Of a stretch of 64,000 nucleotides of DNA, positions 38,723 through 63,964 are shown one piece after another. Made by a program: the position numbers and the translations under genes. Source of the DNA: Ascidiella aspersa. Its lineage: Eukaryota. Numbering within the stretch: position 1 is the stretch's first letter; every line of letters begins with the position of its first letter. The notes below the pieces were generated by a model. That model was not told where the DNA came from. It made no database searches and saw nothing but the letters and a program-made list of their open reading frames with translations. The stretch lies in contig OZ004607.1 of NCBI GenBank assembly GCA_963924565.1, positions 9,176,001-9,240,000 of the forward strand, in the 5' to 3' direction.

Positions 38723-41700
38723 ATGGAATATCGAACGAAGCTCGACTCTATTGAGGAGGTATCAAGCCAACCGTCACCCGTCCATCGATCAAAGGTTAGT
38801 ACAAAGGCAAACATTTATACAGTTTTTCTTGTTGCAATTATCTATGCAAAAACTGTTTTGTTTTGCAATTTATAAGAGTGTTTTCGCGTTTTTTAGGTTT
38901 CAAAGAAAGACATTGTAGCCGTTTGTAGGTTTTAAATAACAAGACAATTTTGCTATTGAGCTAAATTTCGCTATCGTGTTAAATTAAGGTCATATAGACG
39001 CTATATAAAGCGCACACCGACAAGACAAAATCTTAAAGTAACTTGCCCAATTTAAGCGTCTTTTTCGCAATGTTCAGATTCACATGACATTTTACTACAA
39101 AATAACCTCCAGTACCATAACTTGTAATCTAAAGTAGCACACGGCGGTAGTAGTTATTCGTTAATAACTTTGCCTTTGTGCAAATGGTGCAACAAACTAT
39201 GTTTCATGGGCAACAGGTTTTTCATTTATAGAAGATACAAATTTCACATCTTAACCATCCGACGACATCTAAGCTCTTACAGTTTATAATTAATTAACAC
39301 CCCTGACTTCCTGTCACTTTGTAACTTTGTGCAAAGTAATTTCACGCGAGTCACGTCACTTTTTGCCTAAATTCGGCGCCCGCCCGAAATGTTCTAACCG
39401 TAGTTTCAAAACTTGTGTCGCTTTTTCCAGAACGATCGCGACCGCCTCAGTCGCGCCTATGACGTCATAAACCAGCATTTGAAAGCGCGTAAAAGCGTGG
39501 CCAAGCACGCAAAGTGGAAGTTTCTCTTCATCACTGTCTTCCTGGTCACACTGCAGCTCCTACAGGTAACAGTGCTTTCGTGTAGGCCGGGGTCACCAAA
39601 CTACGGCCCGCGGGTCACATTAAGCCCGCCGGGTTAAATAAACTGGCCCGCGTCACGTTTGGTTAATGAAGATGAAGTACAGTTAAAATGTTATCGCATG
39701 CAATTCCAAACTAATTGTTGGTGGCTTGTTAACTGTACGACAACTTAGTAAGGCTCTTGACAGTTTTTATTGCATAGATATTTATATTTTTTTATTGCGA
39801 TAACCAAGTTAATAAAGTTCGACAACAATATTTATATCCGCGATCGTAAACTCATCAGCTATCCGGCCCGCCTTATGGTCAGGCCTTAGTTAGAGTCATC
39901 CGACTCTTTTAAAAAATGTTCTCTCAACCAATGGGTCGCGTTTATTTTATTTTGTCTATGTTGATAAACCTAATGGTATTTGTTACAATAGCGAAGGCTT
40001 CAAATGCCTTAATTAACGCCACAAAGAGTTCTCATAGTGAAAACCTACAAGATGTGACAAACCACCATTTTTTTGCATTTTTATTACAGCCTTTGACCGT
40101 CTCTGAGTTTATTACGGTTTTGATCCTCGTAACCAGATGTTTTTTCACGGAAGTTTATATTTTAACGGCTTCATACTGTTTGCTGAATAAAATGAAAAAA
40201 GTCAGAGAACAGGTGAGATGTGCACCGTTTTAATCGAGATCGTGCATTTCTCTATTCAGCTCATTCTTCTCCACACGATTCACGTCACAAACTTCCTTTT
40301 CTCGTCGCTTTTCACAGCCTTTGCGGCGCTCACCATTGTCGTGAAGCTGTTCGAAGAGTGTTGGCCGCTGCGGAAGAACTACACCAGGGCAAAGAAAAGT
40401 GAGTTGCGGGCAAGAGATGGAACGATTCATTTTGCTTCTACCTATATATCAGTATCGGTAAATTTTGGCCCATATTTCGGCCGATATTTTACTACAAAAC
40501 TATGATATAGTTAGACGTAATAAGAATATCAAAGCCCATACAAAGTAGGTATCATTTTGAACGTTTCGAATAACTCTTTATTCATTTTCATCAGTTATTC
40601 GAAAACGTTCAAAATGATACCTACTTCTGTATGGGCTTTGATATTCTTATTACGTCTTACTACAACCTCGAAACCATTATGCTCCTATGATATAGTTGTT
40701 TCTACAAAACAAACAAATTTTCTATTTTGACGTTTCCAGGGCCAAGAAAAGTAAGTTGTGGACTAGAGATAGACCGATATATCAGTTTGCCTATAATATC
40801 GGGCGATATTTCGCTTCTAACCATATATCGGTAAATTTTTTTGACTACGAAAATATGACCCGTTAATCACACGTTCGGTGCCAATGCACTGCTTCATAAG
40901 TTAATGAGCATTGCGATCGTCATTGGGTAAATCATTGTCTTTTTTATGAAAAAAAATTAGTGTTTAAATGGCCATGTTTTAATGTATACGCCTGTCATCA
41001 AATCAGCTGTTATTTTGCGCCAACAGCAAAACAGCAAAACATCAAAGCAACAGCAAAACATCAACAGTTTTTTCGGAAGCTTTACTTGGTTGGTCGTAGC
41101 AACACGGTTTTCACAACGTACATTTTGGCGAACGACGGCTGTGCCTTTTTGTGGATCGCCCGTTACGCTAATAAACTAGTGTCCGTTAGGAAGTCCAGTA
41201 CCACGCTAAAACTATACACAATAGCGCGTATACAAGTTGGGCTATATCTTTTATAAGTTTGAAATTTTGTACTGGTATTCTACTGAAACGTCATACGCCA
41301 AGTTGCTATTTACCAGTAGATAGGCATTCCAGGCATTATGAATTCGTTTTTGTCAAACTCGTTTAAATGCACATGGCAAACCAAGCGTTTGTGTTAAAAA
41401 CATAATAAAGTGTTGAGAAGTATATCCTTGGTTACCATCTGCCAAGAAAGAAAAAATAAGCACGGAATGGTAACCCTAAGTATAGCTAATTGCCTTACTA
41501 CTTTTGCGTAATTACATGTGCTAGTCATGTTATCATGGTTGTTTTTCACAAAGTTTTTTCTGGTGAAAATTGGTCGCATATTGCCGTCATATTCAACGGG
41601 AACTTCCACCATCAGCGAAGATAACCTTTAAAAGGCGCAGTGTCATGCAACTGGACTGCCCATTTGCGTCACATTGTAAAGCTCTCGATCCACGATAGAG

Positions 41701-43252
41701 CGATTATAAATCACAATGATGTGATATAGTGGCGTCTTCCGTCCGCCTAAATAGCACACAACCTGCCACAAAGCCAAACTGCACTAAGCGAAGCAAACAG
41801 ACTGTTTCACTGTGTATTGCTCACTCTATATGTATATGAGCCCTGCAGTACTAACATGGTGCAAATACAATGAAACTATATTGTTTTTTAAAGTTATTAC
41901 CTCCTGGACCGAAATAATAGGTTATGCGGACTGTATGCTGAGCAGATATCAACTCTGCGGTTTGAGTGTGTCGCGGGTTAAATAACTAATAGCACAGTTG
42001 TATAGTTGCATCTATAAGTATATAACACGTCGTCTTTCGTATTTTACTCTTTGTCTATGTAAGGTTGTTGGTTAATTACTTTTAACTATTTCCAAAGGTA
42101 AATTACGAATAAATAACTCATTTAAATTAACAAGGTAATTACTCTAAACTCATTGATCAATTACTAAGTCATACTATAACAAAGCTCTCCGCTACTTATT
42201 TATTTGGTATTTTTTTACAAATATAAGTACCGAAAAAGCTTCTTAGCTTCTTTAGTATACTATACCTGGTATTAACAGCATATTTATTAACTAAGCCATG
42301 GAATCCATATGTGCAGTTATCCAACTCTGCTGAAGTATTGCTGAGTGACGGCTACGAGATACTTATAATAATATATCGGATGTCCCATTGGCATAATTAT
42401 CAGTTGGCATAATCAGGATTGTAGTACAACCAAGACAAGGCTAGTAAATCCTAGCCTGCGGCGAGGTTCGAACTCGCGACCTTGTTCGAACTCGCGACCT
42501 TGTTCGACTCGACCAACATTCGATATATTTGGTCAGTTAATTCCTCCATTTTTAATTAACGGCGTATCTTTATGGAATCCAAACAAGTGGCAGCAGGTTT
42601 CTGTTTGTCGATTACTGTTCCGCTGATTTCAATTTTAGCGAACCTAAATGGTTAAAATAACTTATCCCTCTATAAACATACAAAAACGGATTAGGTAACC
42701 AACATTTACGCTTTGTCTGACCTAAGCACGTCTTTTTTTTCCTTTACATCTCGACTTGTGTTTATCGAATATCACGGAAGTTTGCCATGAACGCGCGGCG
42801 CTGATTTGCTTTAAAGCCATAGCTTTCTTTCTGACAGACTGTGACTGTTTTGTTCTTAACTCTTTACATTACCTATACTGCTTTCATATTATGTTTTTGA
42901 CACTTTAATTTTATTGTTACTTTGCTATGTATTAATATTTTACTTTACTTAAAGGAATTGGCGATATGCGAAATAATTATTCCTTTAAAAAATGTCCGAT
43001 ACTGGTTTCACTCGGGTTTTTAAACTTTGAGTTTCATTGTTGGGTTTCTTTAATTTTGTTTTATGAAATTTTTATTATTGCTATAACCAAACCTAATTCA
43101 TCAAGACTGTGTTCTTTATTGCGACAGAGATCGCCCCCTTGTGGCACGCCAAGCAACGCATCGAGTACTCTCACATGGCCGCCACTTGTGGCGCCCGAGT
43201 GTCTAACTCCGGCAAAATGGTTTCGGAGGTTTTGGCGATGGATGGAAGTTGA
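38723..43252 (+). CDS. Two-TM protein, SLATT/DUF4231-like family, paralogue A (divergent, ~156 aa)
   Basis: Exons 38723-38794 (MEYRTKLDSIEEVSSQPSPVHRSK), 39431-39565 (NDRDRLSRAYDVINQHLKARKSVAKHAKWKFLFITVFLVTLQLLQ), 40260-40398 (139 nt; LILLHTIHVTNFLFSSLFTAFAALTIVVKLFEECWPLRKNYTRAKK), 43128-43252 (KIAPLWHAKQRIEYSHMAATCGARVSNSGKMVSEVLAMDGS*). Intron positions/phases (0,0,1) and the 139-nt exon match paralogues B-D. The first exon is the least certain. Confidence 0.7.
40513..40684. repeat. Fold-back insertion: ~63-bp inverted arms, flanked by a 13-bp direct repeat
   Basis: Arms 40513-40575 and 40593-40657 are near-perfect reverse complements; ctatgatatagtt occurs at 40500-40512 and 40685-40697. 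Confidence 0.85.
42399..42510 (-). mobile_element. tRNA-derived SINE fragment (same family as 33112)
   Basis: Minus strand reads gtcgcgagttcgaacctcgccgcaggctag...tcctgattatgccaactgat; contains a local 19-bp duplication gttcgaactcgcgacctt. Confidence 0.5.
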
Positions 43253-44980
43253 GCTTCTTCACAAGTTTGCGAAAACATTTTGCCTAATAGTTGACAGAAA
43301 GATGAAGTTGCAAGTCAATAGCAGACTTTGTCTTTTTTGCAGCGACCCTGGTTTTAACTCAAAAGAAGGGAATTTATTTCATGCTTCCAGTATGCCTTTA
43401 ATGCAGTTTGTTTTTCGTTCATAATATTTGAAAATTTTGATTAAATAATTGTTTCCCATTTAGGCGTTTTTAAAGAGGTTCTTCGGTTCAGTCACCGTTC
43501 ATTTTTATCAAATGTTAACAGCGGACTTTTGAACGGATTAAGTACCATAGTAACCCACTGTCCATCAATAGTCACCATACTAGACTAGACCGTATAGGTC
43601 TGGTAAATATAACAAAGTATAGTGCCATTCCTTATGTTTGCTAAAATGGCATCCAAATGTGGATTTTCTTTTCAAGCTGAAACTGGTCGATTTTGTAGCG
43701 TTTTCCTTGCTTAATCCCCCCTTTTACACGGCTCATTTAGCCCTAGGATCGATTGAAGTTTAAAGGGTTGCCGGGCGAACATGTGTAGAAATAAATGTTT
43801 TTATTTGTTAGCGTTGTCTTTTGCCTAACATGGGAAACTTTTTGCTTTGTATGTTGCTTTTTTGCTTGTTCATTGATTCATTTAATACACGATCGCGCTA
43901 ACCAGGAAATGGGTGTTTTAAATAAGTCAGATTTTTCTAAAACACAGGACAACATGTTTTAAAACAGATTAGTCCGTTTTGAACCATGAACATAATTAAA
44001 ACCTTGTCGGCCAAGGTTTTTTTTTGCAAAGTGTCTCTTAGAATGAATGACCGTATAACCATCATGGCTATACACAAGCATTGTTCAGTATGTGACGTTT
44101 GGTAGAATGTTGTATTTTATAAACGTAGTTGGTTTGTTCATTAACAAAAAATTTTTGTTTCACAAAAATCAGAAAATCTTTACAACTTTCTTTTGAAACG
44201 GCTCTTTAAAATAACTTGGCTCTTTTTGTAAATGGTTTATTTTGTCTGAGAAAGGCGCATGCGCTCCTGTTTGCGAAACTATAACTGAAAATTTGACCTG
44301 CATTGATGACGTTCGTCGAATATGACGTAACAATGTGCATCGACTGACCAAAACACTGCACGATTTGCGTTCGGCGAGCGGTCGATAAACAGTTGCGATC
44401 TAACTGAGTTTATGCTTGCCGAAAGGACACGACATTGTCTTAGATGAATGAGAAATTCGCACGTTTTGGGTCCTATTATAATTACACACAACCAAAGGCT
44501 GACATTTGGTTTTATTTGCGCTGTGTCATTCAAATAATTTTATTTGAAAGTAGCAGCCAAACAAGTTGCTTATATGTTTTGGTAGCAGGATTGTAAAGGA
44601 CAGTTTTTCGTAACTATATCTACGAATCTTACTCTGAAGTTTAGTCCGTTGTAATGGACTTAACCTGAGCTACAAAATATGATCTTCAACTCCGGATAGT
44701 TTTAACTTTAAACAGTGGTCTAGCGAAAGCGAGATATCAAGATGAAGATAAAAAGCTCTAGCTATTTGCTTTAGGCACTGTTTACTCTATATATTTTAAT
44801 TTTGATATCCTAACATGTGATCAACTGATCAGGATTTACCAACTTAATCAAAGACGAGAGTTACTGAGTTCTCGCATTGTTGATATGTTAAATTTTGACA
44901 AGGCTTGCTTAAAAATACAATTAACTTGCTCACGTTGAGTAACCAACGAATAGTTAAGCTGCCATATTCTACTACGTTCT

Positions 44981-47900
44981 ATGTCAAGACTAGCCTTTTC
45001 GAGAAAGAGTAGGCTTAACCCAGCTTCTGAAGACGATTCTCACGAAGCTAGTCCACTGCTTTCGAGTCAGTCGCAACCCTCGCTGGCCCGAGACCTCGAC
45101 AGCATATTGGTGGCCGGCGACGCCGAAGATTCACTTTTTGCCGATATGGATCCGGGTAAGTCATCACTTTTTTTGTTTTTGTACTTCGGAACGTTTGCAA
45201 ATGGTAAAATGACAGTTTATTTGCTGTTTTTTTGCGGTATTGCAAATGTTTGCCTTTTTGATATTTTTACGGAAGCTATTGAAACGTAGAACGATTTCAA
45301 GTAATGATAGATGTTTTAAATTCAAAATGACATTTGTCTGATTTTATGTTGGTAGAGAATTTCCTTACAATAGTACAATGATGACTTTACGTATTTTTAA
45401 TTCATTCATCTATAACATTATACCCCAAATTTCTAGGCGGTAGATTTGTGTTACGAGTGATAAAATCACACTGTTAGTTTTTTCTATAGTGATTTAACGT
45501 GGTTAGGTTTTAAACTTGTCCGTTCCTCGCAGACATTAATATGGAGGAGGGTCGGGCTTCAGATGCCTCAATCAGAAGCATGAGCAGTATGAGTAGCAAA
45601 AGCAGTAGGAGCCGAAAAAGTAGAAGAAGTGGCGGGAGCAGCAGTAGCAGCTCCAGTGGAAGCCCCCTCTCCGAAGAATTAGAATACAACAGAAGTAGCA
45701 GCAGCAGCAGTAGTATGAGCGGCAGTAGCCTTTCCGAAGAAGAAGACAGCCGTAGCAGCATTTCAGATGGTAAGTTCTACTGTATGATTTGTTTAAAAGC
45801 TTGGTTGGCAAACTCTAGCAAGAGAGCCGCAAGTTTTACGCGTCTCTCTTGTATTTTCGCATTTACATTGAACGGTATATTTTACCAATTTGCCAAAGTG
45901 ATTGGTTGTGGCGCGCGTCTATTCACATGCTATTACTTTTCTGCAGAATCAATTTTAAAGCTTTAACACCGTTTCACCCCAAAACGCTCAATGAGTAACA
46001 TCACATTTTTTTCTAGTTTTCACTTGCGTTAAATTAAAACATTTGTGGTCTAATTATATTACCTTGGTTCGCTTAATCTAAATAATTTTTTTATAACGAG
46101 CGATACTCATTATTACTAAGTATTACTAAGTACTCGTAACGCGAAGCACGCCTAATATATATAACGTTTCGATACCACTTCATTTATGTTTAACTTTTGA
46201 TAAGGTTCAAATATTACCTACGTCTATATTGGCCTTGGTATTTCTACTACTAACAAAATATAATTTCTATAAAATTGCAGTACTTTCCCGTGATTTAAAG
46301 AAGGGGGGCATCCATCACGAGATGGACCTCGCTCATATCGAGCATCACGACGATCATCTGCACTCTCTGCCCATCGAGGGACAACTGAGCGCCAAGAAAG
46401 TGGTCATGATCAAGAAACCGCCCTTCATTGAACGCCATATGGAGGTTGGTTGCCCAGATCGTACAGTTGAAATGTTTTTTTTGACCGAAAGATGTTATTT
46501 GCTGGTAGTTAAATACACTTTTGAGTTAAGTTACGCTTTTAGACTTTTGAAAATCTTTGTAATTAAAATATCGTTTTTCATTTGGTGACAGACCTGTACG
46601 CCAAAATGTCACCTTTGAATTAAACAGCGCTTTAACAGTTAATAAACTTTATAGAATTTGACCAAATGCTCTCGTTACTGAAAACCGATCATAAAAATCT
46701 ACCTTTTTCAGAAAAGAAGAACACATAAAGTGTTTCTGCTATGATGCAATATTCGCATGTGCAAACGAGCATAAATTTGTTGAATCCCAACTACCGTGCA
46801 CTTGTTTTTTACAATAAGTTTAGTTTCACCTCGTTTTTTTTGTATTAAACTTAAGCCCACTGCTATAAATAGACTTGCATTAAAAATAGTGATTTGCGAT
46901 ACATGACATTTTATTCCGATTCCCAATGTTTTTAGCAAAAAGTCCCTCGAAATGAAATAACGTCATTTATACGCTCAACTGAGCAAAAAAGGGGAACTTG
47001 AAACATTTATTTAGTGTTAAGAAGTTTAAAATCATGCCGAAAATTCCTACCACAATTTAGTATCGGATCGGCACCGATACAACCCTACTACAATCAGCTA
47101 CGATCCGATATTATCTGACATCCCTAATTATAAACTAGAGATAGACCGATTTATAGGTTCATTGATAATATCGGTCAATATTTGGCTTCTACTGATATAT
47201 CGGTATTGGTAATTGTAGGCCGATACTTTGGCCGATATTTCATTGCAAAAATATGATAACATTTTTCCTGTACAACTAACGACTTACCGATTGTTTGATT
47301 AAAAATATTGGGTTTTAGCATTACGATAAGTTAATATGCAAAATGATGTTTTAATAATTAATAAAAGTTTATAAACGCAAACGTTATTGGGATTTTATTT
47401 TCAATTAATTCAGGTTTTGAACATTTCCCAGGTACATGAAAAATCAGTATCGGTATCCGGTATCGGTTGACTAAATAGTAAAAAATCGTGTATCGGTATC
47501 GGCCAAAAGAGTGATAACGGTCGATCTCTATTATAAACTCAATCCAGGTTGACCCTACGAGTGCTTGCAACGACCGAGTGTTACTTGAAGAGCTGCGCAA
47601 TCGCTTCCATCGATCCTACAGAAGGTGGAAGCGTACGGCCAAGTTCTTCGAGGCCGCCAACCTCCTCGTTACCGTCATGCTCGTTTGTTTCCAGGTCGCC
47701 CAGGTAAGAGATTCGAAAGAGGTTTGATTAACTTAGTGAGCGATTATTATTATTTTTTTAATTTTAGGGAAATAAAAATTTGCAAAAAAAAAACTTCGTA
47801 CTCGGATGTCCGTTGATTTATTGATATTATTTTTTTACTTATTTTGCTCATTTTTCTCTCTATTTACTATCGTCTATTTTCTTTGTTGTGAAAAGTTATA

Positions 47901-49350
47901 TATATATAACTCTTTTTTAAATAGTTTTCTTGTTGTGAGTTTTCCTTGTCTTTTTCTCTATATTTCTAATTTTCTTATCTATTCCTATTCTCTACCACTC
48001 CATTCTCTCTCATTACTATTTTTTACAATTGGTTGTTTTAAATTATAAGATGAGAATCCCCCAATTGATTTTTTATACGTCCAATTCGTCGCACGTCATA
48101 AAAAATTTGCACATAAGCACAAAAGTCCATCTGTTTTGTTTTCAGGTTTAACTGATTTAAATTTAATGGCCGTGCCAAGAGAGTCTCAACTTTTATTTTT
48201 TATGTTGATATGTTTTTCTAAACTCAGCTGAAAACTGCTTTCAAACGCAACATTTTTTTTTGAGCGAACCAAACTAAGCACTGAACTTAAAATATAATAA
48301 TCAATTTGGTTGTATCTAAAAAATAAATACTCCTATGAAAAGAATCATGAGATTTTAATTCATCGAAGTCCTACCTTGGAATAGTTTTTTAGTTAAAGTA
48401 TATTTATTTATAGGTTATTATATTTCAACTTCCCGAAATCAGTCCCAAGACGAAGCAGATTGTAGCGACGATCCTTTCGGCTATGACTGCTTCTATTCTC
48501 GCCCTTCAACTTAAGTTGGGCTGGGCCGACAAGGCTGCTAAGAGCGAGCGAAGTGAGTGTTTTAATGGGCTATTCGTACCTGTAGCGACCGTAGAAATAA
48601 CTGTTATTGATTTATTTTAAATGATTTTTTGCCATCCCTCAAGAAGCGTATTTGTATTTTAGAGAATATGATTAGGATTTTAACGTGCAAATATTTAAAA
48701 TGCCAAATCAGTTATACCCCACAAAGCACCTTAATTAATTAAAGTATTGTAGTGGTCCGAAATTACTAGTTGACCAACAAATATTTTTTCCTGCATAAGT
48801 CGGCGAACGTATAAAAAGCACTAAGGGGCGATCAACTGATCCGAAATTGTGCGCGGGTCAAAGTTTTACAAAAATAACGTTAAACTGACAAAAAATTATA
48901 TTCTAATTTTTTTCCAAAAAAACAAAAAAAAATTTAATAAAAACTCGCGTTTTAATCGAAAAATTGTTTTCACGATTATAATCAAGCATGCTTCTGTTTT
49001 TAAATTGTGATAGGCAGTCAAAATGCTGTGTGCCGACAATCATACAGCTAGATATTGGGACGATTCGCGTAATCGCAAACGCCTCACACGTTTTTTCGCA
49101 GAAATTTCCCATTTTTTGCCAAAAACCAACAAAACTGAATAAAACTAAAAGCGACAAGACGCTTGTTAGCCGGAAATTAACTTTCTGTCACGTTTCAGGC
49201 GCCCTACTTTGCGGCAAGCTTCTGCATCACGCCGAGTACCGCATCAGCGTGTTACAGGCAGGCGGGCATCTGCACGACGTCGTCAAGCTGTGGAATGTTT
49301 CTCTGCAAATCGAGACCAAGGATATCCCTCCTTTCCTCATACCCTACTGA
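44981..49350 (+). CDS. Two-TM protein, SLATT/DUF4231-like family, paralogue B (340 aa, long Ser-rich/His-rich N-terminal extension)
   Basis: Exons 44981-45155, 45533-45769, 46281-46444, 47548-47703 (156 nt), 48414-48552 (139 nt), 49199-49350 (152 nt) splice in frame (1023 nt). Core: KKPPFIERHME-VDPTSACNDRVLLEELRNRFHRSYRRWKRTAKFFEAANLLVTVMLVCFQVAQ-VIIFQLPEISPKTKQIVATILSAMTASILALQLKLGWADKAAKSERS-ALLCGKLLHHAEYRISVLQAGGHLHDVVKLWNVSLQIETKDIPPFLIPY*. Confidence 0.85.
47136..47530. mobile_element. hAT (Ac-like TAG..AT terminus) MITE
   Basis: TIR tagagatagaccg/cggtcgatctcta; perfect 8-bp TSD ttataaac; subterminal atcgg/ccgat repeats. A partial copy starts at ~40763. Confidence 0.88.
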
Positions 49351-49710
49351 TAACAAACAAGATCAAAATTGTTAGTTTGTTTCAAACTTGGTTCAATCAA
49401 GGTTTAAGAACGACTTTCGTACAAACTACTTTGGTTACTGAGGAAATTTTAACCAATATTTGCTACTTATTACCCCACTGATCCCGACCCGACGAACAAG
49501 ATCAAATTTGTCTTTTGTTTCAAACTGAATTTAAACTCGACTTTCGTTTAAGGTACCATACTGTGGTTACTGAGGAAAATTCTAAACAATATACGCTTCG
49601 TATTACCCTACTGATCCCGACAGCACATACAAGATCAAATTTTTTTGTTCAAACTTGGTTCAAGGTTTAAGCACGACTTTCTTACAAAGTACTTTGGTTA
49701 CTGAGGAAAG
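49340..49710 (+). repeat. ~130-bp tandem repeat x3 beginning in the last codons of paralogue B
   Basis: Units start taccc(t/c)actgat..acaagatcaaa..ttcaaact..cgactttc..tggttactgaggaaa at ~49340, ~49471 and ~49603. Confidence 0.8.
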
Positions 49711-51629
49711 TTGAATCAAGAAGAGGTTAAATCTTGATTAAACCATACAAGAAAGAGTATGAAAGTTAATTAGAAGAATTTTAATCAAGCGTTTGACGTA
49801 CTACCTTCGCGATTTTATTCCTAAAATGGAACACAAATATTATAACCCCTTATAAAAGCAGAGTACTAGCAGTAACTCGAAGGAATTTGAATTCATCTAC
49901 TTGATATTATCCTACTTTTGTTAGAAAAAATATGATAAAACGCAAGGATTTTCGAATGAATTTTTTTTAACTTTTTCATGAACTTTGTTCGAAACAAAGT
50001 ACTTCATTTACAGTTTACACCAATGAATTTAATAAATTTACTTGATATCTCTTACCCTACCAATTTTGATCAAAAATTGCTGAAGAAACGCAAGCATCTT
50101 CTAACGAATTTGTTTCAACTCTAAATATGCCAAGCCAAGGGCTTCATCTCCGCCTGTAAAGCTTCGAAAAACTTTATTAGACGAACCCACTTGTTTACAT
50201 TCCACTCATGTGCATGCTCTAAACGGGGTTTTGTAAGGCATTTTACTGCAGTTTCGGCAAGTTAGCAGTCGCCAGCTGGAAAATAATATTTTTAATAAGT
50301 TGCTGTAATTTAAATGCATCGTGCTAATTTCGACGTGAAATTTTCAATAAAATCGTGTATGTGTGGCGTGCGTCTTGCAAAAAGCATATGATAATGTGGA
50401 AACACGAATCAATCGCTTGCGACAGTTCTGCAGCGAATTGATTCTGATTTGATTGTATTCCACTTCTTGCACGAAACAATGTTCAATATGACGTCGACAA
50501 CAACAATGATGATGTCGACAAAAAACAAAGTTTTATTCAAAACTGAACTGTTAACCACCTGTTTGTATTGGCTTTGATGCTCAAAGTTTCTCGACTTTAA
50601 ACAATGAACAATAATAGGTAAAATAAGTTTGAAAAATCACTAACAACTTGAATTGCCTGCAAATAACGTGTATCTGTTTTAAAATAGTATTTTTGACTGA
50701 TATTAACCGGGTGATTGGCTATTAAAAACGGCGTGCATTACTCTGGCAAGTTATGCATTTAAAATGACATAGGACTATCTGCTTGTCACCTTATTTACAG
50801 AGTCGATTAACCATGGGTTTATAACCTTAATTGCCTTTGATGAAGGATGGCCCTGGTTTGAGCTTAAACATTTCACTGATATCATTATATATGTGGGATA
50901 AAATTTATTGATTGTTTCAGGTTCAAACTGAATTGTTTGATCGCAGAAGACGTTGATGTTCTGATAGGTATTTTTAGCGTCCTTTACAAGAGTTAAGCAA
51001 TTGCAATTCTGTATCTGTTTGTGAACACTCGTCCCCGTACTGGCGTACTGCGTTTAAGCGTTATTTATTAAAACGTCTGTTTTTCTTATAAAAAAAGTTT
51101 GCACCCTGTCATGTTCAGCCTTTTACGCGGTCGACTGTATTCGCCGCAACAGACTAACTGTGACGTCAGAAATTCGTGCACGCGGCGAAAAAATGTCACT
51201 TCGTGGTGCGATGTGGGGGGGTTCGATGTTACCTTCCTTACAGAACGCGCCTTCGATTTAAGGCAACGCCGCAGTTTCAAGAGTCGTTTTTCAGTTTTAC
51301 CATTTCGTTTTGACTGAGCAATGCATATAAATAGAAGCAAAAGTTTTTTGCTTTTTAGGCGTAAACCTATAGCTATGTCTAAAATCAAAAAAATAGTATG
51401 AAGAATGAGGTTATTGAGGAAAATTGTTTTTTTATGTAACTAAACTTCTGGGACTGTGTTTTTATACTAAATATTTCTGGATCGCAAGTGCCAATTTCGA
51501 AGTGTAAAGTAGAACTGAGGCAGGAGAGTGCTGAGATCAGATTCCGGACCTTTTAAAAGTTTGCCTTTGCATCCAGTTTCAGACAGTATTTGTTATTCAA
51601 GTTTGGAAATTTGATTCTTAAATGAAACG

Positions 51630-53640
51630 ATGGCGGCCGACACAACACCCCAACGTAAGTTATAAATTCGTATCTACTTAAAAAACAGTAAGTGTGCGAG
51701 TTAAATATTTTTCTCTGCCCTTTCTTGATCTCTGCCCTTTCTTACAGAAAACAATGTAGAGCCTACAAAATGTGTCGAAGCACCTGGCAATGGTGACCCG
51801 AAAAAGAAGCAACCCCCTTTTTGGGAAAGGGAAGTCAAGGTGAGATGTTTTTTCGCTTTAATCAGGGTCCTTAATTAATAACATAGCAGCCAACCGCTCG
51901 TAATTCTTTTAGAAATTATGCATATCGTGGTTTCCAACATCTAGGTGTGCTATTTAAACAGCACTTTATTTATTAATTTATAAAATTTCAGTAAGAACAT
52001 TGATCTAAACCAGTGGTTGTCAACCGGGGTACCGCGGCACCCTAGGGTGCCATTTATAATGCTCAAGGTGTAAGATTAGAGTGAAATGAATTCAATTTTA
52101 ACTTCCTATGTTGTGCAGAGTTGATATGTGTTGTTTCAGTTCCGTTTATTGTGACATACATTCCAGTGAATTACCTACGCAAAACTCTTGTAGGGGTGCC
52201 GCAATATATTTATTATATCTGAGAGATGCCGCAAGCCATAAAGGGTTGAGAACCACTGATCTAAACTAAAAAGCGTGAATCGTTTTTTGCCTGTAATTCT
52301 TGACGATAACGCGCTAAATTTTTACACAATTCTTTACGCAGATCGAAAATGCGAAAGACGTTGACGCGGAAGGTTTGCTGACCGAAATGTACGGCAAATA
52401 CATCGGAGAGTTTAGGCGTTGGAAGCGCAAGGCCAAGGTTTTTAAGTGTACCAACATGCTAGTCACGTTGCTAATCGTAGCAATGCAAGTAGCGCAGGTA
52501 AATACTATCAGGTTTCATCAGAAATTAGCCTACTTCTACAATGTTTTTAATGTTTTCTTCTAAGTTAACTTAGTTTAACAAAGTTTAAAATTGCAGTCAA
52601 ATTCAACGGCGTAACTGTTTAAACAACGTAAATACAGTATAAAACAGCAGCAGAATTGGACAGCAAGCGGTGATACTAAAAATGCGCATATCTTGATCAA
52701 TAAATTTGAAATTTTTGTCGTGATTGCCATTATTCGTGCAAGAGACGTTGCTATACGTTAGCCAGAATTTGAATTTGGCAAATTTCCACGAAAAATTATG
52801 ATATAACCTTTTCGGGGCCATTGTACTCTAGTAAATGGCGTTTCAATAACGCCTCGGTACGTTATTTGAAAACAAAATGATAATGATTTAATCGATGAAT
52901 TCTCAGAAGGTTTTTAACCCGGTATTGAATTTTCACTTGATACTTTAAGGTTATCTTGTTCCAAATCCCCGAACTGGATATGGAAAAGAAAGCAGCTTTG
53001 GCCACAATCCTTCCAACTGTAACTGGCGCCGTTCTTGCTATTCAGTTGAAGCTAGGTTGGGCTGAAAAATCTGTCAAGTCCAAAAAGAGTAAGTGACCTC
53101 ACTCTTCGTCTTTTTAGTTTGGCTTAAAATTAGAATTACCTACTTAACGAAAAATAGAGTTTGACTTAAAATATGAACAGTTAATCAATTGAAGGTAATT
53201 TACAGTCGATTTTGAGGAAATCGAAATTCCCTCTTAGTACTAAATTGGTAACTATCATCCTTAAATTCCAAGTCTGCTTGGTACCTTATTTGCCATTGGA
53301 GCGTTTTGTAAACAGGCCCTATTATTAAGCATTTAAAGTAGCATCGGTAGGAAAGGTACTACCAAAACCAGTCATGTTATAGGTTAATTTTAGAAATAAA
53401 CACTTGGTTTTATTCCTGCCATGTAGTTGGGGCCATTACATTATTCATAAGGGTAAAACAGCTAACTTTTTTACATTTCTTCTTGAAGGTGCCAGACTGT
53501 ACCACAAACTTGCAAAACATACCGAATACCGCCTGAGCGTTATGAAGGCTGGCGGTGAAGTGTCGGACTCGATCAAAGTTTGGAATGCCGCCCTTAAGGC
53601 TGAGGCAACCGAGATACCACCTTTTCTTGTGGCTTACTGA
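51630..53640 (+). CDS. Two-TM protein, SLATT/DUF4231-like family, paralogue C (187 aa)
   Basis: Exons 51630-51654, 51748-51839, 52342-52497 (156), 52950-53088 (139), 53489-53640 (152). Core: KKKQPPFWEREVK-IENAKDVDAEGLLTEMYGKYIGEFRRWKRKAKVFKCTNMLVTLLIVAMQVAQ-VILFQIPELDMEKKAALATILPTVTGAVLAIQLKLGWAEKSVKSKKS-ARLYHKLAKHTEYRLSVMKAGGEVSDSIKVWNAALKAEATEIPPFLVAY*. Confidence 0.88.
52011..52258. mobile_element. hAT-type MITE
   Basis: TIR cagtggttgtcaacc/ggttgagaaccactg; perfect 8-bp TSD atctaaac. Confidence 0.88.
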
Positions 53641-53891
53641 ACTGATGTTGGTGTTAGTTTTTCGGTGTATATTTTTGGAACCTCAAGAATTATATCGCCC
53701 TTTTTCGATTTGTATTGCTGTGAAGTTAATTTCATTAAAATTTACTCAAAATACACGTTTTCACTTTGTTTAATGTTGTAATACGTGTTTCATACTTTTC
53801 ATAAATAACAAGCATTATTTTCATAAATAACAAGCATTTCGAATGAGGCGAGAATCACTTAATCATAAAACTATATTGATTACCTCTATAC

Positions 53892-54346
53892 CAGTGCGTT
53901 TTAAACTGGTGTATAAAAGATACAGCACACCCCAGGTGTACCAATATTGTGCAAGGGTGTACCACATTGATGGGGTGTACTGGGGTATACAAGATACCGC
54001 ATTACACTAAAGCCTGTGCTCAGTCAGGTATCATAATAAATAAACAAGTTTATTACCATTCTGACTGGATTGTACACTACATGAATGTCGCCACGTGTCA
54101 CTACGTGTATTTAAGCGTACGTAGCTTATAAGATGCTATATTCTATATTGTGACATCATAACCAAATATTTCTCTTCATAATCGTTATTGTGGGGTACTA
54201 ACTAGTTCTTCATAGCGGTTAATGTTCTTTTCGCAGTACAACAGGGTATATGTTTTTAAGTTCAGTACATTGCGTGGACTGGGGTGTACAAGTTCTTCAG
54301 TAAACGTAAAAGTGGTTACTGTTCAAAAAAAGGTTGACAGGCACTG
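53892..54346. mobile_element. hAT-type MITE
   Basis: cagtgc...gcactg termini; TSD ctctatac/ccctatac (7/8); ggggtgtac subterminal repeats. Confidence 0.7.
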
Positions 54347-55076
54347 CCCTATACAACTACTGATATTTAAGCGGTATTCCCTTTACATTTTAACACAGTT
54401 ATTGCAATTTGGAAGAATTATTTACATTCTACTAAACGTTTGCTGAAGCAAATGTCACGGTAGAAAAAAGTATTTTAAAACTAATCATCAAAACCAGAAT
54501 AAGGAGAAGCATCATATTTGTCCTTGTTGCGAAATGTATTCTTGGTCGATTGTAACTAGTTCTGAAAAAAAAACAGCAGAAGGTTGTTTACGCAGCTCTG
54601 TTGTTTTCGCCCCTGGCACAATGTTTTTATGTAAATCGTAACAGTCTAATTTGTTTGCGTTACAGCAGGGCATTAAACACTTAATGTAACTGTTTCAGAT
54701 TATAACATAAAGTGTTCCGACTTAAAAACACTTGTTTTTGTCTGAACGACACGAAACACACAAAAAACTCCTCGCAGACCAGTTGGTGTCCCGTGGAGCA
54801 GTTTTATCCGCTAATAAAAGGTCTTCATTCCCAAGCAGACAAAAAACAGCTAATAAAAGGATCGACTAATCATTAAAAAAATATACAAGTTGTCCCCACG
54901 TAATTTTGTTGAGGTACACTTTGCACGGATCTGGAATGCAGCTTAATAAGGAATGTCAATGTCATCAAAACGTCTTTATCAAGATGATGACAATTTACTT
55001 GACATTCAGTATTAAGCAAATTTTGTTTAGTTTGTGAATCACCAATCCATCGGATTTATAGCGAAAAATTACTTAC

Positions 55077-55235
55077 CCATGCATGAGGGCCGTTGAGTTT
55101 TCCACAAGACCGGCACTTTTGCCACAAGTTCGCCCAGCTACTTCTACTTTTCCAGCTTCTACCACAATTGCACCGATAAAACACGTAACGGCTTTGTCTT
55201 TCTTTTCGGGAAGCTTTACGATTTTGTCGATCCAT
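55077..55235 (-). pseudogene. Diverged duplicate of the ZCCHC24-like zf-3CxxC micro-gene (exon 1 intact; cognate exon 2 not recognisable): truncated gene or pseudogene
   Basis: 159-nt ATG-to-donor (gtaagt) exon, same length as the neighbour's exon 1: MDRQNRKASRKERQSRYVFYRCNCGRSWKSRSSWANLWQKCRSCGKLNGPHAW (26/53 identical by eye). Downstream acceptors near 54810/54850 give short frames lacking HPQHLCEKC. Confidence 0.6.
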
Positions 55236-56201: not shown

Positions 56202-56290
56202 TAATATGTATATAACTTAATTTATAAGTTTGTCAGTGTACTACCCCTAATATGTATATAACTTAATTTATAAGTTTGTCAGTGTACTAC
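56202..56290. repeat. 43-bp direct duplication (period 46)
   Basis: taatatgtatataacttaatttataagtttgtcagtgtactac at 56202-56244 and 56248-56290. Confidence 0.85.
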
Positions 56291-56459
56291 TGTTATATGT
56301 ATTAGAACTGCTGGATTTGCAGATTATATTTTTCAATTTTTTAAAACAACAAAACAACATCAAATATATGCAATAGCTGGTCTATAGATTCTACGAGAGG
56401 GTTACATTCATACGAAAAAAGGGTCCAATCTAAATATTTGAAGAAAGTTTTCTGGCGCG

Positions 56460-57439
<980 letters not shown>

Positions 57440-59706
57440 TTACAAAAGTCTGTTCTAATGACACCAGTTTCGGTCAATTGCATACCACGATGGATTTTAA
57501 TTGGCACTGTACCGCTTACCAACCGAAAACCGATTATAATTTACCCAAGTTAAAAACATTTTAAGTCGAGTTATTGCTGTATTGAGATCTTTCTATGAGT
57601 TTCCAATGAATAATAATGTAACTACGACTGACAGAAATTATCATAGGCAACAAAAAAGTTTTTTAGTTTGCTTTGTTTTATTGTATAACGCTGTAAATAC
57701 CGTTGTTGCCATGTCATGGTAAGATGAATGAGCGAAAGTGCTATAAAACCTCATAACATGAAACTAAATCTAGCCCATGGGTGACTTAGCTGCACACAGA
57801 AAGACCTGTCAATAAACGGCTTTCGCCTTTTGAAATGATGTTTTTCCCGAACGATCAGAATCAATTATTAGCTACAGACTAGTAGGCGAATTACTTACGT
57901 GTTTTTCTGACGCGCATCATCGTAGGCGTTACACAGTACGTAACTTCCTTAGATTGTTCAGGTCGTCATTGTTGAGATGTCAAAAAGGTAAAATAAATTC
58001 ACCTGGACTTTGCCGACAACTCTAAGGCCACTTTTAATTTAAACGCCATTTTTGTAAACGATCTTTGGCGCTACTAGTTACTCTGGTCAAGCAACATTCA
58101 AACTAATAAAAAAAACTTGAGTTTCGATTCTTTACGCTGGGAATGGTGTAAGCTGTGCTGTACGACATACCAACCTTCAGCAAAACAACCAAAGTTGAAC
58201 TGTTGTTTTTTCAAACGCGAAACCTTAGTTTCGTTGGCCATTCAAGTCACGTGATGAACGCTGCCGTCTGCGGTGTTTTTTAAATTCCACACAATACACA
58301 CAAATTACACCACCAATATGACGTGAGCGGACAGCGGAGAGTGCAACTAAACACGTAGTTTGTACAATATTATTGACTTGTTTGTTTTGACAAATTTATT
58401 TAGCGAATCCCGTTGTGTATATGTATTATTATGTCTAATCACAACTCAACTGTTTAAATATGTTATCTTTTAATGCAACAATTTTTGCGTTTCTGCTTGC
58501 TTGGACGCGGTCCGTCCATTTAGCGGCTTAAAAACTTTACAATTTAGGTTGTCATGTAATGGGAAGGTACAGGTTTTTTTTATTAAGCCAATACAAAGTA
58601 CCGTGGGTTGTTTTATTTCAACAACAGTTGACAAGCCAAATGTAAATCAAGCGTATTGTACATAATAGCTGCCTATGCCAGCCACGGCTGTACCATGTTT
58701 TGACACACCTCATACTGTAAATCATACGAAGGTAGAGTAGCATGGTTTGGTGGAAAGTTTGCCATCCAGGCATTGTGGGTTCATTTAGTTATATGACAAC
58801 CCAACAAGTTTACTGTATTTCAATCCCCTGAGAGTAATTATTTTTATATTGGTTATTTACTTTACATCTATTTGGTTATGTATTTATACTAATGATCCTA
58901 TGTAAAAATTGACTCGATTTTAAAGGCCGGGGTCGTAGCCCTTGTCGGTATCATTGCGGCTTTAAACTTGTTTTGACTTCATTTTCGATAAAATGCATTC
59001 CGGTAATGCATTTAGATGAGGTAAAACTTATAGATGATTACCAACCTAATAGAAAACTAACCAAAAGACGAAAAACGGCAAATTTTACTACGAATACTTC
59101 GATGATTCTTTTCCGCATACATTTGTCCTATTAAACCTGTGTGGGTTTGCTGTAATGATTTTATTTTGCAGTTCAAACATAAATGTGGAGATTACATAGT
59201 AAACCCATGATATTTTCTCACGTACTCTGCTGTTGTTTACCATTGAGCAGTTGCCTGTTTGCCGTTTCCGTATTGCCTTGCTTTTATTTCGTTCGGAGCA
59301 TTTAGACCGACTTCGCAGACTTTGATACAAATTACAATCGTTTTCGATCGATGTTTTTTTTTTTACTTTTTTTAATACACGGTTATCGGCAAGTGGCAGG
59401 TGTGAGCTGTATAACTTTTTTAAATTACAATCAAATTGGTAAAAGGAAGGACTTAAACAAAAACAATTTTTCGGCTACAGGGCCTGTAAAATAACCTTGT
59501 TATTGTGAACAGTTTTATTAATAAAAAGTATTTGTAGCCAAGCCCCTTTCATCACAGAGGTACTTTCTGCATGTTCATGAGATGAGAAAAAGCCTTAACA
59601 CTACTGAGTTATTTAAGTTAATAGGTAAGTTTCGACGCTTATGAAATGCACGTTCAAAGGGGCTCTCCATAGTAACGTGATTTCCTTTACCCAGGAGACC
59701 AGCAAT

Positions 59707-62700
59707 ATGCAATATACCCAGGAGACCTTCACCGACAAAGCCTACAAGAATAAAGCCGGAAAAATCGGGTCAACGATTTGGGGTCGTCAGTGCAAGGTAA
59801 AATATGCAAGTTCCCTATTTTGTACGTTTACGTAATACGGATAGCCTTTCAATTTTTGTCCAAATTGAAAAAATCACACAGAACTTACAATTGAAATTAC
59901 TTCGTTGGTCCACTTCACATATATTTTTTCAGCACTTGATTAATTAGCTTCTACATATATTTTTAACTTACTTTGCATTTGTACGTCATTGTATCTAAAG
60001 AAAAATAAAGAGAGGGCTTGCTTTATTAAAGCTTTTTTTGCCTTTGAAGACTAGCAACGTTAACCAAAATTAAACACATGTAAATACGTATTTTGTTATA
60101 TTGCGGGTAACTCATTTACTACGGCAAAAGTGTCAATGACCTACAAAAACACTTCGATGTCCAGATTTAACATTTGTTAGCTCAAAATCATCGTTACATT
60201 CCGAGTTAGTTTAATCGCAATTTTTACTTTTGACAACCATTTTAAATTTTGAAAATTTTACAACCACAACTGGATATTAATCATACTTTCGTCAATAATT
60301 CAATTACCCAAAATATTTCCTTAACCTAAATTTCGAATATTGGTAAAGAAAGTAGTAGTAGTCACGGCTTTATAATGTTATTGGCAAGCCGTTCTTTGTA
60401 TTCCTTTTGTAAATCTTTTGAATCCTTCTATCTTGGTGAAAGAGCAGCTGTTATCAGATGATCAAGCAAATTGAAAAAATAAATGAAACAAAACCAAAGC
60501 CTGCAAAGCTTACGTGGCGATCACTAATGGCTACCAAAGCAAATGCAATTTGTTCAGCTTGAAATATTCTTGGTATGCCTAAAATTTATTGGATTTTTTT
60601 TTTATATATCTTAGATCCCTAACTCAAAGGACATTGATGCTGAAAGCCTGCTACGCCAAATGCACTCTCAAGCAAAGGAGTCCTTCAAATACTGGACTCG
60701 TAAGGCTTCCAAGTTTAAGGGCTCGCACATTGCATTCATTATTGCCATCCTGTTACTACAACTCGCCCAGGTTGTTATTACTAATGCTAAAACGAGTCAA
60801 GCAACTCGGCAATTATTTGCCAAGTACTGGTTTAACTGTGTGCCATTTTAGGGTATAACCCATACGAGTAAATGTCGCAAGAACTCGAACGAGTCAATTT
60901 AATAAACTCGTAGAGTACTCACTCACGTACAGATTTATTTTGAATTTGGTGATTCTTTGCTTACAGCAATTTTTAATAGAAAATGTCATGTAAAGCAGGG
61001 GTCGGCAAACTTTTTGGCCCTGCGGACCGGTTTGAAACTTAAAATTTTCCGCGGACCGGCTTTAAAAAACAACAAATGTTCAGTAAAGGTAGTTGATTAA
61101 AACATTTTTTCAATGGACTAATTAAAATGCATACGCTTGTGTCTAACACTTTCCTGCCTGAACATCAAAATAATAAATCGTTTTTCAATGCATCTCATAT
61201 GGTCACAGCACACTGGTTTGTTTTGAACCTCACGAGTGCTTAATACTAATTGCGATTTTTTATCAAACTAATCAACCATGGAGTATGCTTAAACGAAAGT
61301 TAATATGTTTTGAATAGAAAACTACATTTAAATGATTTTGACTTATTTCTTAGCATTTTGCGTACGGTTTGGGTTTGAATCAAAATTTTAATCTGGCAAC
61401 CCTGCTACGGACCGGTAACGAACTCCTCGCCGCGGACCGGTGGTTGCCGACCACTGATGTAAAGTACGAAGGCCATTGACAAGTTATTACAGTTTATGGG
61501 GCTTTCCATTTTGTATGATTTTGTAATTGATTACTTCGTTTCCAACAACAGAAACATGTGGCCATGTTAGAGCGCACAAATATATATACAACAATTATTT
61601 TGCTAGAAATAAAAAAAAAATTAAAATTATGAACTACAAAAATATATCTAAAATCAAGATCTTAACAGAAAACCGTTCCTGCATTCCATAAAACTCTTAC
61701 GAGAAAATACCAAATGTATATAGCATAGTAGAGTGGCCGGCAAACCGTTTGCCGCAGAGCCATTTTAGTGGGCCGCTAGTTAGCCTATTCTTGAATAGCT
61801 TAGTGTTATCATGTAGTGGTGGGTTAGCCGTACATTCATTGCACTTTATTTTAAAAGTTCGTGTGGCTAAGTTTTTTCATGTTGTCTCAGCGTGGTTCAG
61901 ACCGCCGTGCCAAATGTGGTCCTGAGAGCCTGTCGAACTATATTTTTTGCCAACTTTAACTATATGTCAACGCAAACTTTTAACTACATATATACACAAA
62001 GGTTTTACGTCGTGGGCCTTCAATAGCTGTGAAAAGTAAGCTTTGGGCCGCGACAAAAAAGTTTGTCGAACACTGGTATAGTACTTTTTTTGCTTAGATA
62101 CGCATTTAATGAAGTTGTGATTCTTTTAGGTGATTGTCTTTCAACTGCAAACTATTTCCGGCTCTGTCAAATCCGCTCTGGCGGTTATCATACCCTCGCT
62201 TACAGCTGCCGTGTTGACCATGCTACACAAGCTAAACTGGCTTTCTAAAGCGACAAAGAGCAAGCGGTGTAAGTATACCACAGAGACAATATGTGGAATC
62301 GGAAATCGATGTCTTATAATTTGTAGCGAAAAAAAAAAAATATATATATATATATATATTAAATGTATATAAATATTTTTTTTTCGCAATTCATTAAACC
62401 AGTACTCAGACAGGGAGTCGAACCGTTTGACTTTTCTGGTTGAGATTCGGTTCGGGTTGAAGATTTTTTTTTCGGGATCCAGTCTAGTTCGGTTTCGGTT
62501 CGGAGCAAATTAAACGTTCCGTTTCATCTCCGGCTGGACTAAATTTATTTTCAAAACTGGTTTATAGAGTTCAATATAAGTTGCGTTTAAGGTAAAAATG
62601 TGGTCCAATAAATGTAGAGAATAATTATTAAATTATAACGCGTATTTATTTTAAGTTTCGTGACGTATTAGGTAACGGCAGCTTATTTTTGAAATATCTA

Positions 62701-63964
62701 AAAAATAAAAAATACACGTTTTATTTAATCAGTATTCATTTTTTTCCATAAAAGTTCGAACATGGCATAACTTGACTCGGTATGCTGAAGTGAACCATTT
62801 TTTGACAGGTTAGGGTTCAGGTTATTTCAAAATATTTAGCTCCTTAAAATTTTAGGGTTCAGGTTCGGAAAACATTGGCCCCAAACCGGTTCATAAAGTT
62901 CCTATTCCGGTTCGGTTCGACTTCATGTCCTCAAACATTTTTTTGTTCGACACCTTTGAAAAAGTTTTTTTAACTTGCGACGCGTTCAACAATAGAAACT
63001 TGCTATTTTGTAATTTTTTTCAGCCGTTTGTTTCTGAAAATCATAAACAACTGCTGTTTTTTTTCTAACCACAAGTCACATGTCGGAGATAAAACACATG
63101 TTGGAGATAATGGAAACTGTAAGCACTTTATTACCGCGAATCATTTTATATACGAAACGTAACCATTATGCGACGCCCGAAAATTTTCTTTTAAGAACCT
63201 CTGCGTTAGGGCTTTAATTTTCCTTGTACTTCGATAACCTATGCAAAAGACAAACCAGGGCTGCGGAGTCGGACTCGGGACTCGAGGAGTCGGTTTGTTT
63301 TCCTGGAGTTGGACTCGGGACTCGAGTAAGACCACGTAAAACTGAGTCCCGAGTCCGACGTGCGCATGTGCAGTACCAAATTTTTAAACTGATATGACCG
63401 CCAACTGGAAACTGTAAAGGTGGAATAGCATATGGGCATATGGTGGGATATTTTCCAACCATGTGTTGTGAGTGAATGAAATATACGACACCCCTATAAG
63501 TGGATTGCTGAATCTCCGCGTTATTTTAGTTACGTAAATTGGCGGAGTACAGGCTGTATAGTCATGACCGGACTCGGGACTCGACGAAATCGACTCTGCA
63601 GCCCTGAGACAAACAACTGTTTTTTTTTCGACTTATTAGGCTAAAAGCATTCACTTTTTTTGTTTCAGCGAAGGGAGATTACCATAAAACGAATGCCAGT
63701 TTTTAAAACTAGACTTTTTGGTTTAGAATGTGTGCTTTATCCCTGATAGTTCTCCAGTGGCCAGCCCATAGCTTGTGAAACCACAATATTTATACATATG
63801 TATTTTTAACAGGTGCCGCCTTCTTCGACAAGATTGCCAAGCACACCGGATACCGCCTGAAATTAATGGAGTTTGGTGGCGAGGTTACCGACTCGGTCAA
63901 AATTTGGAATGCAGCCTTATTGGGGGAGGCAACTGAAATCCCACCCTTTCTCATGAGCTATTGA
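59707..63964 (+). CDS. Two-TM protein, SLATT/DUF4231-like family, paralogue D (178 aa)
   Basis: Exons 59707-59796, 60615-60770 (156), 62130-62268 (139), 63813-63964 (152): MQYTQETFTDKAYKNKAGKIGSTIWGRQCK-IPNSKDIDAESLLRQMHSQAKESFKYWTRKASKFKGSHIAFIIAILLLQLAQ-VIVFQLQTISGSVKSALAVIIPSLTAAVLTMLHKLNWLSKATKSKRC-AAFFDKIAKHTGYRLKLMEFGGEVTDSVKIWNAALLGEATEIPPFLMSY*. Last exon 32/49 identical to paralogue C by eye. Confidence 0.87.
60996..61456. mobile_element. hAT-type MITE
   Basis: TIR caggggtcggcaa/ttgccgaccactg; perfect 8-bp TSD atgtaaag; gcggaccgg subterminal repeats. Confidence 0.88.
63256..63606. mobile_element. hAT-type MITE, 'cagggctgcggagtc' family
   Basis: TIR cagggctgcggagtcg/cgactctgcagccctg; perfect 8-bp TSD agacaaac; ggactcgggactcg subterminal repeats. 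Confidence 0.9.

Follow-up and report, generated by a model that had tools for sequence, protein, structure and literature searches.

The question raised by this stretch of 64,000 nucleotides from the ascidian Ascidiella aspersa (contig OZ004607.1 of the assembly GCA_963924565.1, positions 9,176,001 to 9,240,000 of the forward strand; hereafter the window) is whether the spliced genes lying in tandem on its plus strand encode animal proteins of the SLATT/DUF4231 superfamily, what such proteins could do and where they could have come from. Proteins of the SLATT type are among the commonest predicted membrane effectors in the conflict systems of bacteria and viruses. A number of bacterial defence modules, for example cGAS, STING, gasdermin, TIR and viperin, survive in animals and have reshaped views of the origin of innate immunity; tunicates, to which the ascidians belong, are the sister group of vertebrates. 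The initial annotation of the window, made from the letters of the sequence, recognized four paralogous genes, designated A, B, C and D in their order on the contig, and assigned their products to this superfamily.

Gene structure, copies and expression of the family

The core of genes B, C and D is represented by three plus-strand exons of 156, 139 and 152 nt, the last of which includes the stop codon. The phases of these exons are 0/0, 0/1 and 1/stop, and the split codon encodes S, S and C, respectively. Direct reading showed canonical AG/GT dinucleotides at all core exon borders, with intact splice sites in the three genes. The lengths and phases given as shared in the initial annotation agree to the base, with GT–AG sites, and each motif listed there is present in all three genes, including the basic W-containing helix, the first transmembrane helix (TM1) ending in Q.AQ, the second transmembrane helix (TM2) followed by KL.W, and the IPPFL..Y end. 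The exons are as follows.

46418..46444, plus strand: gene B, upstream exon, 3' end only, carrying the KKPPF..R..E motif (sequence reading)
47548..47703, plus strand: gene B, core exon 1, 156 nt, amphipathic basic helix and first part of TM1 (family profile, 44 bits)
48414..48552, plus strand: gene B, core exon 2, 139 nt, coding for the last part of TM1, a short loop, TM2 and the first K-rich residues (49 bits)
49199..49350, plus strand: gene B, core exon 3, 152 nt with stop, two C-terminal helices and IPPFL..Y end (47 bits; RNA reads at 49301-49500)
51630..51654, plus strand: gene C, modelled first coding exon with ATG, 25 nt coding, donor GTAAGT (sequence reading; RNA depth at 51501-51900)
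51748..51839, plus strand: gene C, exon 2, 92 nt, KKKQPPF.ERE.K motif (tblastx against copies E and F; tblastn with homologue P0055; sequence reading)
52342..52497, plus strand: gene C, core exon 1, 156 nt (47 bits)
52950..53088, plus strand: gene C, core exon 2, 139 nt (53 bits)
53489..53640, plus strand: gene C, core exon 3, 152 nt with stop (58 bits; bin with the highest RNA depth, in the sense of the plus strand)
59707..59796, plus strand: gene D, weak candidate for an upstream exon, ending in ..W.R..K followed by gtaaaa as in gene C (reading of open frames; missed by the profile and by regular expressions)
60615..60770, plus strand: gene D, core exon 1, 156 nt (44 bits)
62130..62268, plus strand: gene D, core exon 2, 139 nt (31 bits)
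63813..63964, plus strand: gene D, core exon 3, 152 nt with stop (51 bits)

Pairwise tblastn of the translated exons of B, C and D gave E-values of 1e-10 to 1e-20. The K-rich PPF motif upstream of the core is kept in C, in copies E and F described below, in B and in a protein of Ciona savignyi. The product of gene C would have about 190 residues according to the exon lengths, and a length of about 190-250 residues was estimated for the encoded proteins from exon lengths and full-length homologues. Searches were performed with single exons, with the unsplit frame of copy G, or with homologues from databases; full-length homologues run contiguously through both predicted core junctions. Judging from sequence, genes B, C and D belong to a tandem array of predicted spliced genes on the plus strand.

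A scan of the 308-Mb genome with the family profile yielded six recognizable members, B, C, D, E, F and G, with paralogue similarity at E-values of 1e-10 to 1e-26. Copy E lies 6-8 kb past the end of the window and has the same three exons; copies F and G are located on a different chromosome (contig C8), F with exon-by-exon identity to gene C of 71-86%, and G as a member of a second subfamily. The four-gene tandem family of the initial annotation thus stands for B, C and D, whereas gene A is uncertain and the array is larger, as E adjoins it and F and G lie on contig C8. In copy G, core exons 2 and 3 are fused in a single open frame (L003:4829-5107), colinear with the split exons of the other copies and with one residue at the position of the split codon, which provides natural evidence for the join of exons 2 and 3.

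Synonymous differences between the paralogues are saturated (proportion pS 0.65-0.77, from per-exon counts, summed), while the proportion of nonsynonymous differences, pN, is 0.11 for C versus F and 0.26-0.44 for the remaining pairs. None of the five copies B-F has a stop in the core exons. By these sequence comparisons, the paralogues appear as old duplicates under purifying selection, and neither as a recent burst nor as pseudogenes.

Expression was assessed in one RNA-seq run of the same species over the region 47701-53700, to which 27 reads were assigned, all of them sense for plus-strand transcripts. Depth was found at the last exons of B and C, at the 5' exons of gene C, and at 49701-50500 and 50901-51300. 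Genes B and C are transcribed at a low level.

Two further observations concern this part of the array. At position 50123, within the transcribed segment 49701-50500 between B and C, G is present in five of five RNA reads, and A in the assembly and the DNA contigs; the difference could be an allele or the result of editing. In the intron before core exon 1 of gene C, the segment 52087-52300 has a word depth of about 29,000 in the DNA run, versus about 106, and one DNA contig omits 130 bases of it (52087-52218); this segment resembles a high-copy repeat that carries an insertion/deletion allele.

Relationship to the SLATT/DUF4231 superfamily

Among profile families, NCBIfam SLATT_4 was matched at E<=0.05 by 26 of the 32 family members scanned, with a best E-value of 2.1e-8; SLATT_1 was matched by six members, SLATT_fungal by two, and the next unrelated model also by two. 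In members with listed alignments, the SLATT_4 matches are in register over the first helix, TM1 and TM2, roughly at profile positions 14-109. The Pfam tally is headed by DUF4231, SLATT_1 and SLATT_5, although, among tunicate and tunicate-like members, every Pfam SLATT match has an E-value of 0.01 or worse, and the fused open frame of copy G matched no Pfam family. A distant two-domain relative, P0033, reaches 27.0 bits with DUF4231, versus a gathering score of 24.7, with the alignment in register from the helix through TM1 to TM2; the profile built from the window finds this same protein at E 2.4e-9, via TM2 and the motif after it.

Other resources point in the same direction. PADLOC gave matches at about E 1e-3 to '2TM effector' models of CBASS (cyclic oligonucleotide-based antiphage signalling systems) and to the model of the reverse transcriptase (RT)-associated SLATT protein. 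In ESM-Atlas, the neighbours included clusters of giant-virus proteins (0.94), one of SLATT_4 (0.92) and one of DUF4231 (0.91), and UniProt automatically names the orthologues of Ciona savignyi and Clavelina as SLATT-domain proteins. A six-frame scan with the SLATT_4 hidden Markov model gave no match in the genome of the window, nor in the control genomes, and is hence uninformative.

The fold was modelled with AlphaFold2 for homologue P0003 from an alignment of 23 sequences. The first approximately 80 residues are disordered in the model, and the core, with predicted local distance difference test (pLDDT) values >90, consists of helices at 98-146 (amphipathic helix running into TM1), 152-176 (TM2), 178-207 and 215-229. 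In a Foldseek search of BFVD with the AlphaFold model, the best matches belonged to Nucleocytoviricota, and at least nine of the top 35 were named SLATT, with probabilities near 1 but E-values of only 1e-3 to 1e-1 and TM-scores of 0.3-0.6.

In the exons of the window, two 19-residue hydrophobic windows with Kyte–Doolittle values of 1.5-1.9 were found: core exon 1 ends with one of them, and the other lies centrally in core exon 2; TM1 spans the border of exons 1 and 2, and TM2 lies mid exon 2. Lys and Arg are dense before TM1 and after TM2, and the loop of 8-10 residues is mixed to acidic, which under the positive-inside rule suggests that both termini are cytosolic. The topology expected in the initial annotation, two transmembrane helices with both termini in the cytosol, agrees with both the hydrophobic segments and the charge pattern. 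The predicted layout of the proteins therefore includes a short or disordered tail, the K-rich PPF motif and a core of about 150 residues; in the model, the core would begin with a long, basic amphipathic helix that continues as TM1; a loop of about 8-10 residues would connect it to TM2, after which come a lysine-rich turn and a further pair of helices.

Taken together, the results with SLATT_4, P0033, PADLOC, ESM-Atlas, UniProt and, less clearly, BFVD uphold the SLATT/DUF4231 assignment of the initial annotation as remote homology, SLATT_4 being the commonest match of the profile scan, below its cut-off. On sequence comparison, the family is very likely a remote branch of the SLATT/DUF4231 superfamily, outside any single curated family.

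Two members of the family also match the NCBIfam model 'seadornavirus VP11' (best E 1.9e-4), and in BFVD the structural model also matched Q1I0U1, VP11 of Micromonas pusilla reovirus, with a TM-score of 0.45-0.54. Some VP11 proteins of reoviruses may share a SLATT-like fold.

The range of the family was determined with a profile composed of the frame of copy G and the translations of exons 2 and 3 of copies B-F. Among 1.84 billion representative proteins, 54 matches were obtained at E<=1e-3, 27 of them at <=1e-10, and 30 of the 54 were looked up for names. These named matches include several loci of Ciona intestinalis, as well as Clavelina lepadiformis and Styela clava; the only named animal outside the tunicates is the acoel Convolutriloba macropyga (P0052, XP_075265131; E 3.9e-4), whose protein sits among the outgroup sequences on a very long branch and could represent a separate acquisition by acoels, or a contaminant or viral contig. 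The homologue of Ciona savignyi was found by a word-indexed search with the family alignment as query, which returned three proteins through a lossy word filter and is silent on taxonomic range. Other matches are encoded by contigs of about 1 kb from marine samples, mostly from JGI/IMG, Logan, ENA and a Tara-derived set; these are probably transcripts, since they contain complete intronless coding sequences. The Deinococcus PKD protein P0045 and P0032, a protein of 2174 residues, also matched the profile but were discounted, as repeats or composition probably account for these two matches.

In the midpoint-rooted tree, the tunicate-type clade has support of 99/98 and comprises two old subfamilies, each present in Styela and Clavelina. 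The initial description of the family as lineage-specific fits these results, since the named homologues are nearly all from tunicates.

Four proteins of marine metagenome contigs L006-L008 (P0031, P0033, P0049 and P0050) have about 380-550 residues and two SLATT-like domains in tandem, encoded without introns. In the tree, the domains of P0031 and P0033 group according to their place in the protein, which indicates that the duplication is old. Marine eukaryotes or viruses are the assumed source of these two-domain proteins.

Gene A and the neighbourhood of the array

Gene A is represented by three candidate exons upstream of gene B.

39431..39565, plus strand: exon resembling core exon 1, 135 nt, phase 0/0, basic helix and TM1, ending in ..LQLLQ followed by gt (AG/GT borders; 7.6 bits, E 0.48)
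40260..40398, plus strand: exon resembling core exon 2, 139 nt, phase 0/1, hydrophobic TM2, ending in ..KK (borders read; 2.7 bits)
43128..43252, plus strand: weak candidate for the last exon, 125 nt with stop, entered in phase 1, lacking the IPPFL tail (1.7 bits)

The first of these is the best profile match of the window outside the family, and the three pieces are colinear and are the top three plus-strand profile matches of that region. The 135-nt exon ends at the same Q, followed by gt, as in B, C and D. No tblastn match to gene A was obtained with 87 family proteins, and no other copy of its 135-nt and 139-nt exons is present anywhere in the genome. The claim that A is a fourth paralogue was therefore retained in part: the 139-nt exon and the phases agree, but the similarity is not significant and the IPPFL end is missing. 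By sequence, gene A is a probable, though unproven, very divergent relative of the family.

The peptide IPPFLI at 42540-42557 was considered as the C-terminus of gene A and rejected as a chance match: it lies in an unrelated frame and context, the residues before it are unlike the last exon of the family, and no stop occurs where the family proteins end. The peptide read past the 139-nt exon into the intron (40380-40505) recurs in similar form at 40740-40866 on the plus strand, about 350 bases downstream, which suggests a small local duplication.

Identified neighbours of the array are represented by a C-type lectin gene and by zf-3CxxC genes; the search for partner genes covered SMODS. Between genes C and D there are two small genes, each with a single exon.

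55056-55235, minus strand: likely shorter paralogue of the following gene, with the same CxxC spacing (sequence reading)
57116-57421, minus strand: zinc-ribbon gene (Pfam Zn_ribbon_3CxxC_2, E 7e-14)

Upstream of the array, at 5266-11077 on the minus strand, several open frames resemble C-type lectin domains, one with a weak Pfam Lectin_C match (E 0.003), which suggests a multi-domain lectin gene.

Possible function, origin and comparison with known systems

SLATT proteins are described as predicted pore-forming effectors of conflict systems (PMC7159879; bioRxiv 10.64898/2026.04.29.721553); in DRT10, the SLATT protein is required for defence, and the activation of SLATT is still an open question (bioRxiv 10.64898/2026.04.29.721553). 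The best overall explanation of the tunicate family, considered probable, is that its members are hairpins of the SLATT superfamily with a triggered membrane-leak activity and a virus-linked origin. Like other SLATT proteins, they would sit in the membrane as hairpins whose cytosolic helices govern self-assembly, and the assembled structure would render the membrane leaky. Self-assembly would be initiated by a cytosolic cue that acts on the N-terminal tail or on the C-terminal helices; as the proteins are standalone, the trigger would be a separate factor or a modification. This mechanism of self-assembly and leakage is proposed tentatively, as a possibility that may well fail.

Most likely, the family would have been gained once, in the stem lineage of tunicates, from a polinton-like element, a giant virus or the like, or by an exchange with such an element, and would afterwards have acquired introns and undergone duplication. 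The closest outgroup, sister to the tunicate clade with support of 87/87, is the 188-residue P0037, encoded at 8001-8567 of a 14.7-kb metagenomic contig. This contig also carries genes of a Pox_A32-type packaging ATPase, an rve integrase and a protein-primed B-family polymerase, as well as a capsid-like gene, and this gene content indicates a polinton-like element. A SLATT homologue is also annotated in viruses with adinto-like genes (PMC8502044). Together, the position of P0037 and this published case make an exchange between tunicates and viruses plausible.

A number of results weigh against the explanation by triggered, virus-derived SLATT hairpins. SLATT_4 scores reach at most 34 bits versus a cut-off of 55, the best tunicate member having 31.5, and no tunicate member is found at a curated Pfam or NCBIfam cut-off; the Pfam scan of P0055 was empty, and single exons matched no Pfam family. 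The PDB holds nothing comparable, as both Foldseek and a profile search of PDB sequences returned generic helical bundles. No SMODS match was found anywhere in the genome, although the control genomes did respond, and in the sampled parts of the window nothing related to nucleotides came to light; the classic context of SLATT genes is thus missing. Old, conserved paralogues, as these appear to be from their sequences, are unlike a fast arms-race family, and RNA coverage is thin, with zero splice joints at the three-read limit. The midpoint rooting of the tree is compatible with either direction of transfer, and the formation of pores is unproven even for bacterial SLATT proteins.

Three other explanations have to be compared with this one. 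Should the similarity reflect nothing but the generic composition of helical hairpins, the genes would form a tunicate-specific two-pass family unrelated to SLATT; consistent with this are the direct matches, all below curated cut-offs, the weak Foldseek E-values (1e-3 to 1e-1) and the tendency of profiles rich in transmembrane segments to draw spurious matches, of which the Deinococcus PKD protein is an example. Composition, however, does not readily explain why SLATT_4 tops the tally with 26 of 32 members, the next unrelated family having two, why the matches with listed alignments keep register along the helix, TM1 and TM2, or why the link uses a specific motif after TM2, beyond the transmembrane segments. 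The intermediate P0033 passes the DUF4231 threshold, and feature-based (ESM-Atlas) and fold-based searches agree independently; an unrelated family is considered very improbable. Membership of the superfamily can also be combined with a housekeeping role, in which the genes encode constitutive, non-lytic small membrane proteins, such as factors of organelle or ion homeostasis, or adaptors. Strong purifying selection on very old paralogues, retention of both subfamilies across distant ascidians, and low but present transcription in an ordinary RNA-seq sample agree with such a role, as does the lack of a fused sensor domain and of a SMODS gene in the genome. On the other hand, a tandem expansion to at least 4-5 copies would be expected more of conflict-related or environment-facing genes, relatives are present in viruses and mobile elements, and the related bacterial families all occur in defence contexts (PMC7159879). 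A housekeeping role is rather unlikely, and it retains this weight because the paralogues are old, constrained and without a partner enzyme.

A capture by the tunicate ancestor of a viroporin- or holin-like SLATT gene of a polinton-like virus, adintovirus or giant virus, which now serves an antiviral function, by interference with related viruses, or has simply been co-opted, has a comparably low probability. It is in line with the location of the nearest outgroup, P0037, on a polinton-like contig, with the best feature and fold neighbours in Nucleocytoviricota, and with the SLATT homologue annotated in a virus that has adinto-like genes (PMC8502044). The transfer could nevertheless have run in the other direction, and that paper describes the viral gene as homologous to host proteins; the array is not flanked by viral genes, its members are old and have several introns, and a scan of IMG/VR with P0037 gave no confirmed close viral relative. 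The narrower proposal that a tunicate SLATT family derived from a polinton-like or giant virus serves, once triggered, as a pore for cell death or antiviral defence, perhaps in concert with the interleaved zf-3CxxC micro-genes, is improbable.

The explanation by triggered SLATT hairpins of virus-linked origin would place a SLATT-type protein, linked to polinton-like viruses, in the sister group of vertebrates and, if the triggered pore is real, would mean that an animal uses a SLATT effector without a cyclic-nucleotide synthase. A conserved and expanded SLATT-like family in ascidians, the laboratory model Ciona included, provides a tractable eukaryotic system for the study of hairpin function, and the nearest outgroup on a polinton-like element makes virus-to-host transfer testable. 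In the literature searched, no paper pairing SLATT with tunicates or other animals was found, nor was an experimentally established mechanism of SLATT. The tunicate orthologues already carry the SLATT name automatically, and the family is thus not wholly undescribed; its significance is tempered by this label and by the putative character of the pore and of the immune role.

Among known families, SLATT_4 resembles the tunicate proteins in the N-terminal helix, the two transmembrane helices and the helix that follows; the tunicate proteins differ in being spliced eukaryotic products with a disordered N-terminal tail, the KKKQPPF motif and the IPPFL..Y end, and in being standalone, without a nucleotide-synthase or sensor neighbour. 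With DUF4231 (Pfam PF14015), the tunicate members themselves give E 0.07 or worse, and only P0033 passes. The SLATT-named proteins of Ciona savignyi and Clavelina are orthologues or close paralogues, with P0055 and P0004 colinear over the whole core, although they come from other species and their names are automatic. CBASS 2TM effectors and the RT-associated SLATT proteins of DRT10/UG17, weakly matched in PADLOC, are the toxic output of defence systems in the settings studied functionally and need a partner, either a cyclase or a reverse transcriptase with non-coding RNA, whereas for the tunicate family a search that covered SMODS found none. The best fold matches and best ESM-Atlas neighbours are the SLATT-named proteins of giant viruses (Fadolivirus, Klosneuvirus, Marseillevirus, Pyramimonas orientalis virus, Heterosigma akashiwo virus and Aureococcus anophagefferens virus); although viral, intronless and only 10-20% identical in sequence to the tunicate family, they are of similar size and, like its members, standalone.

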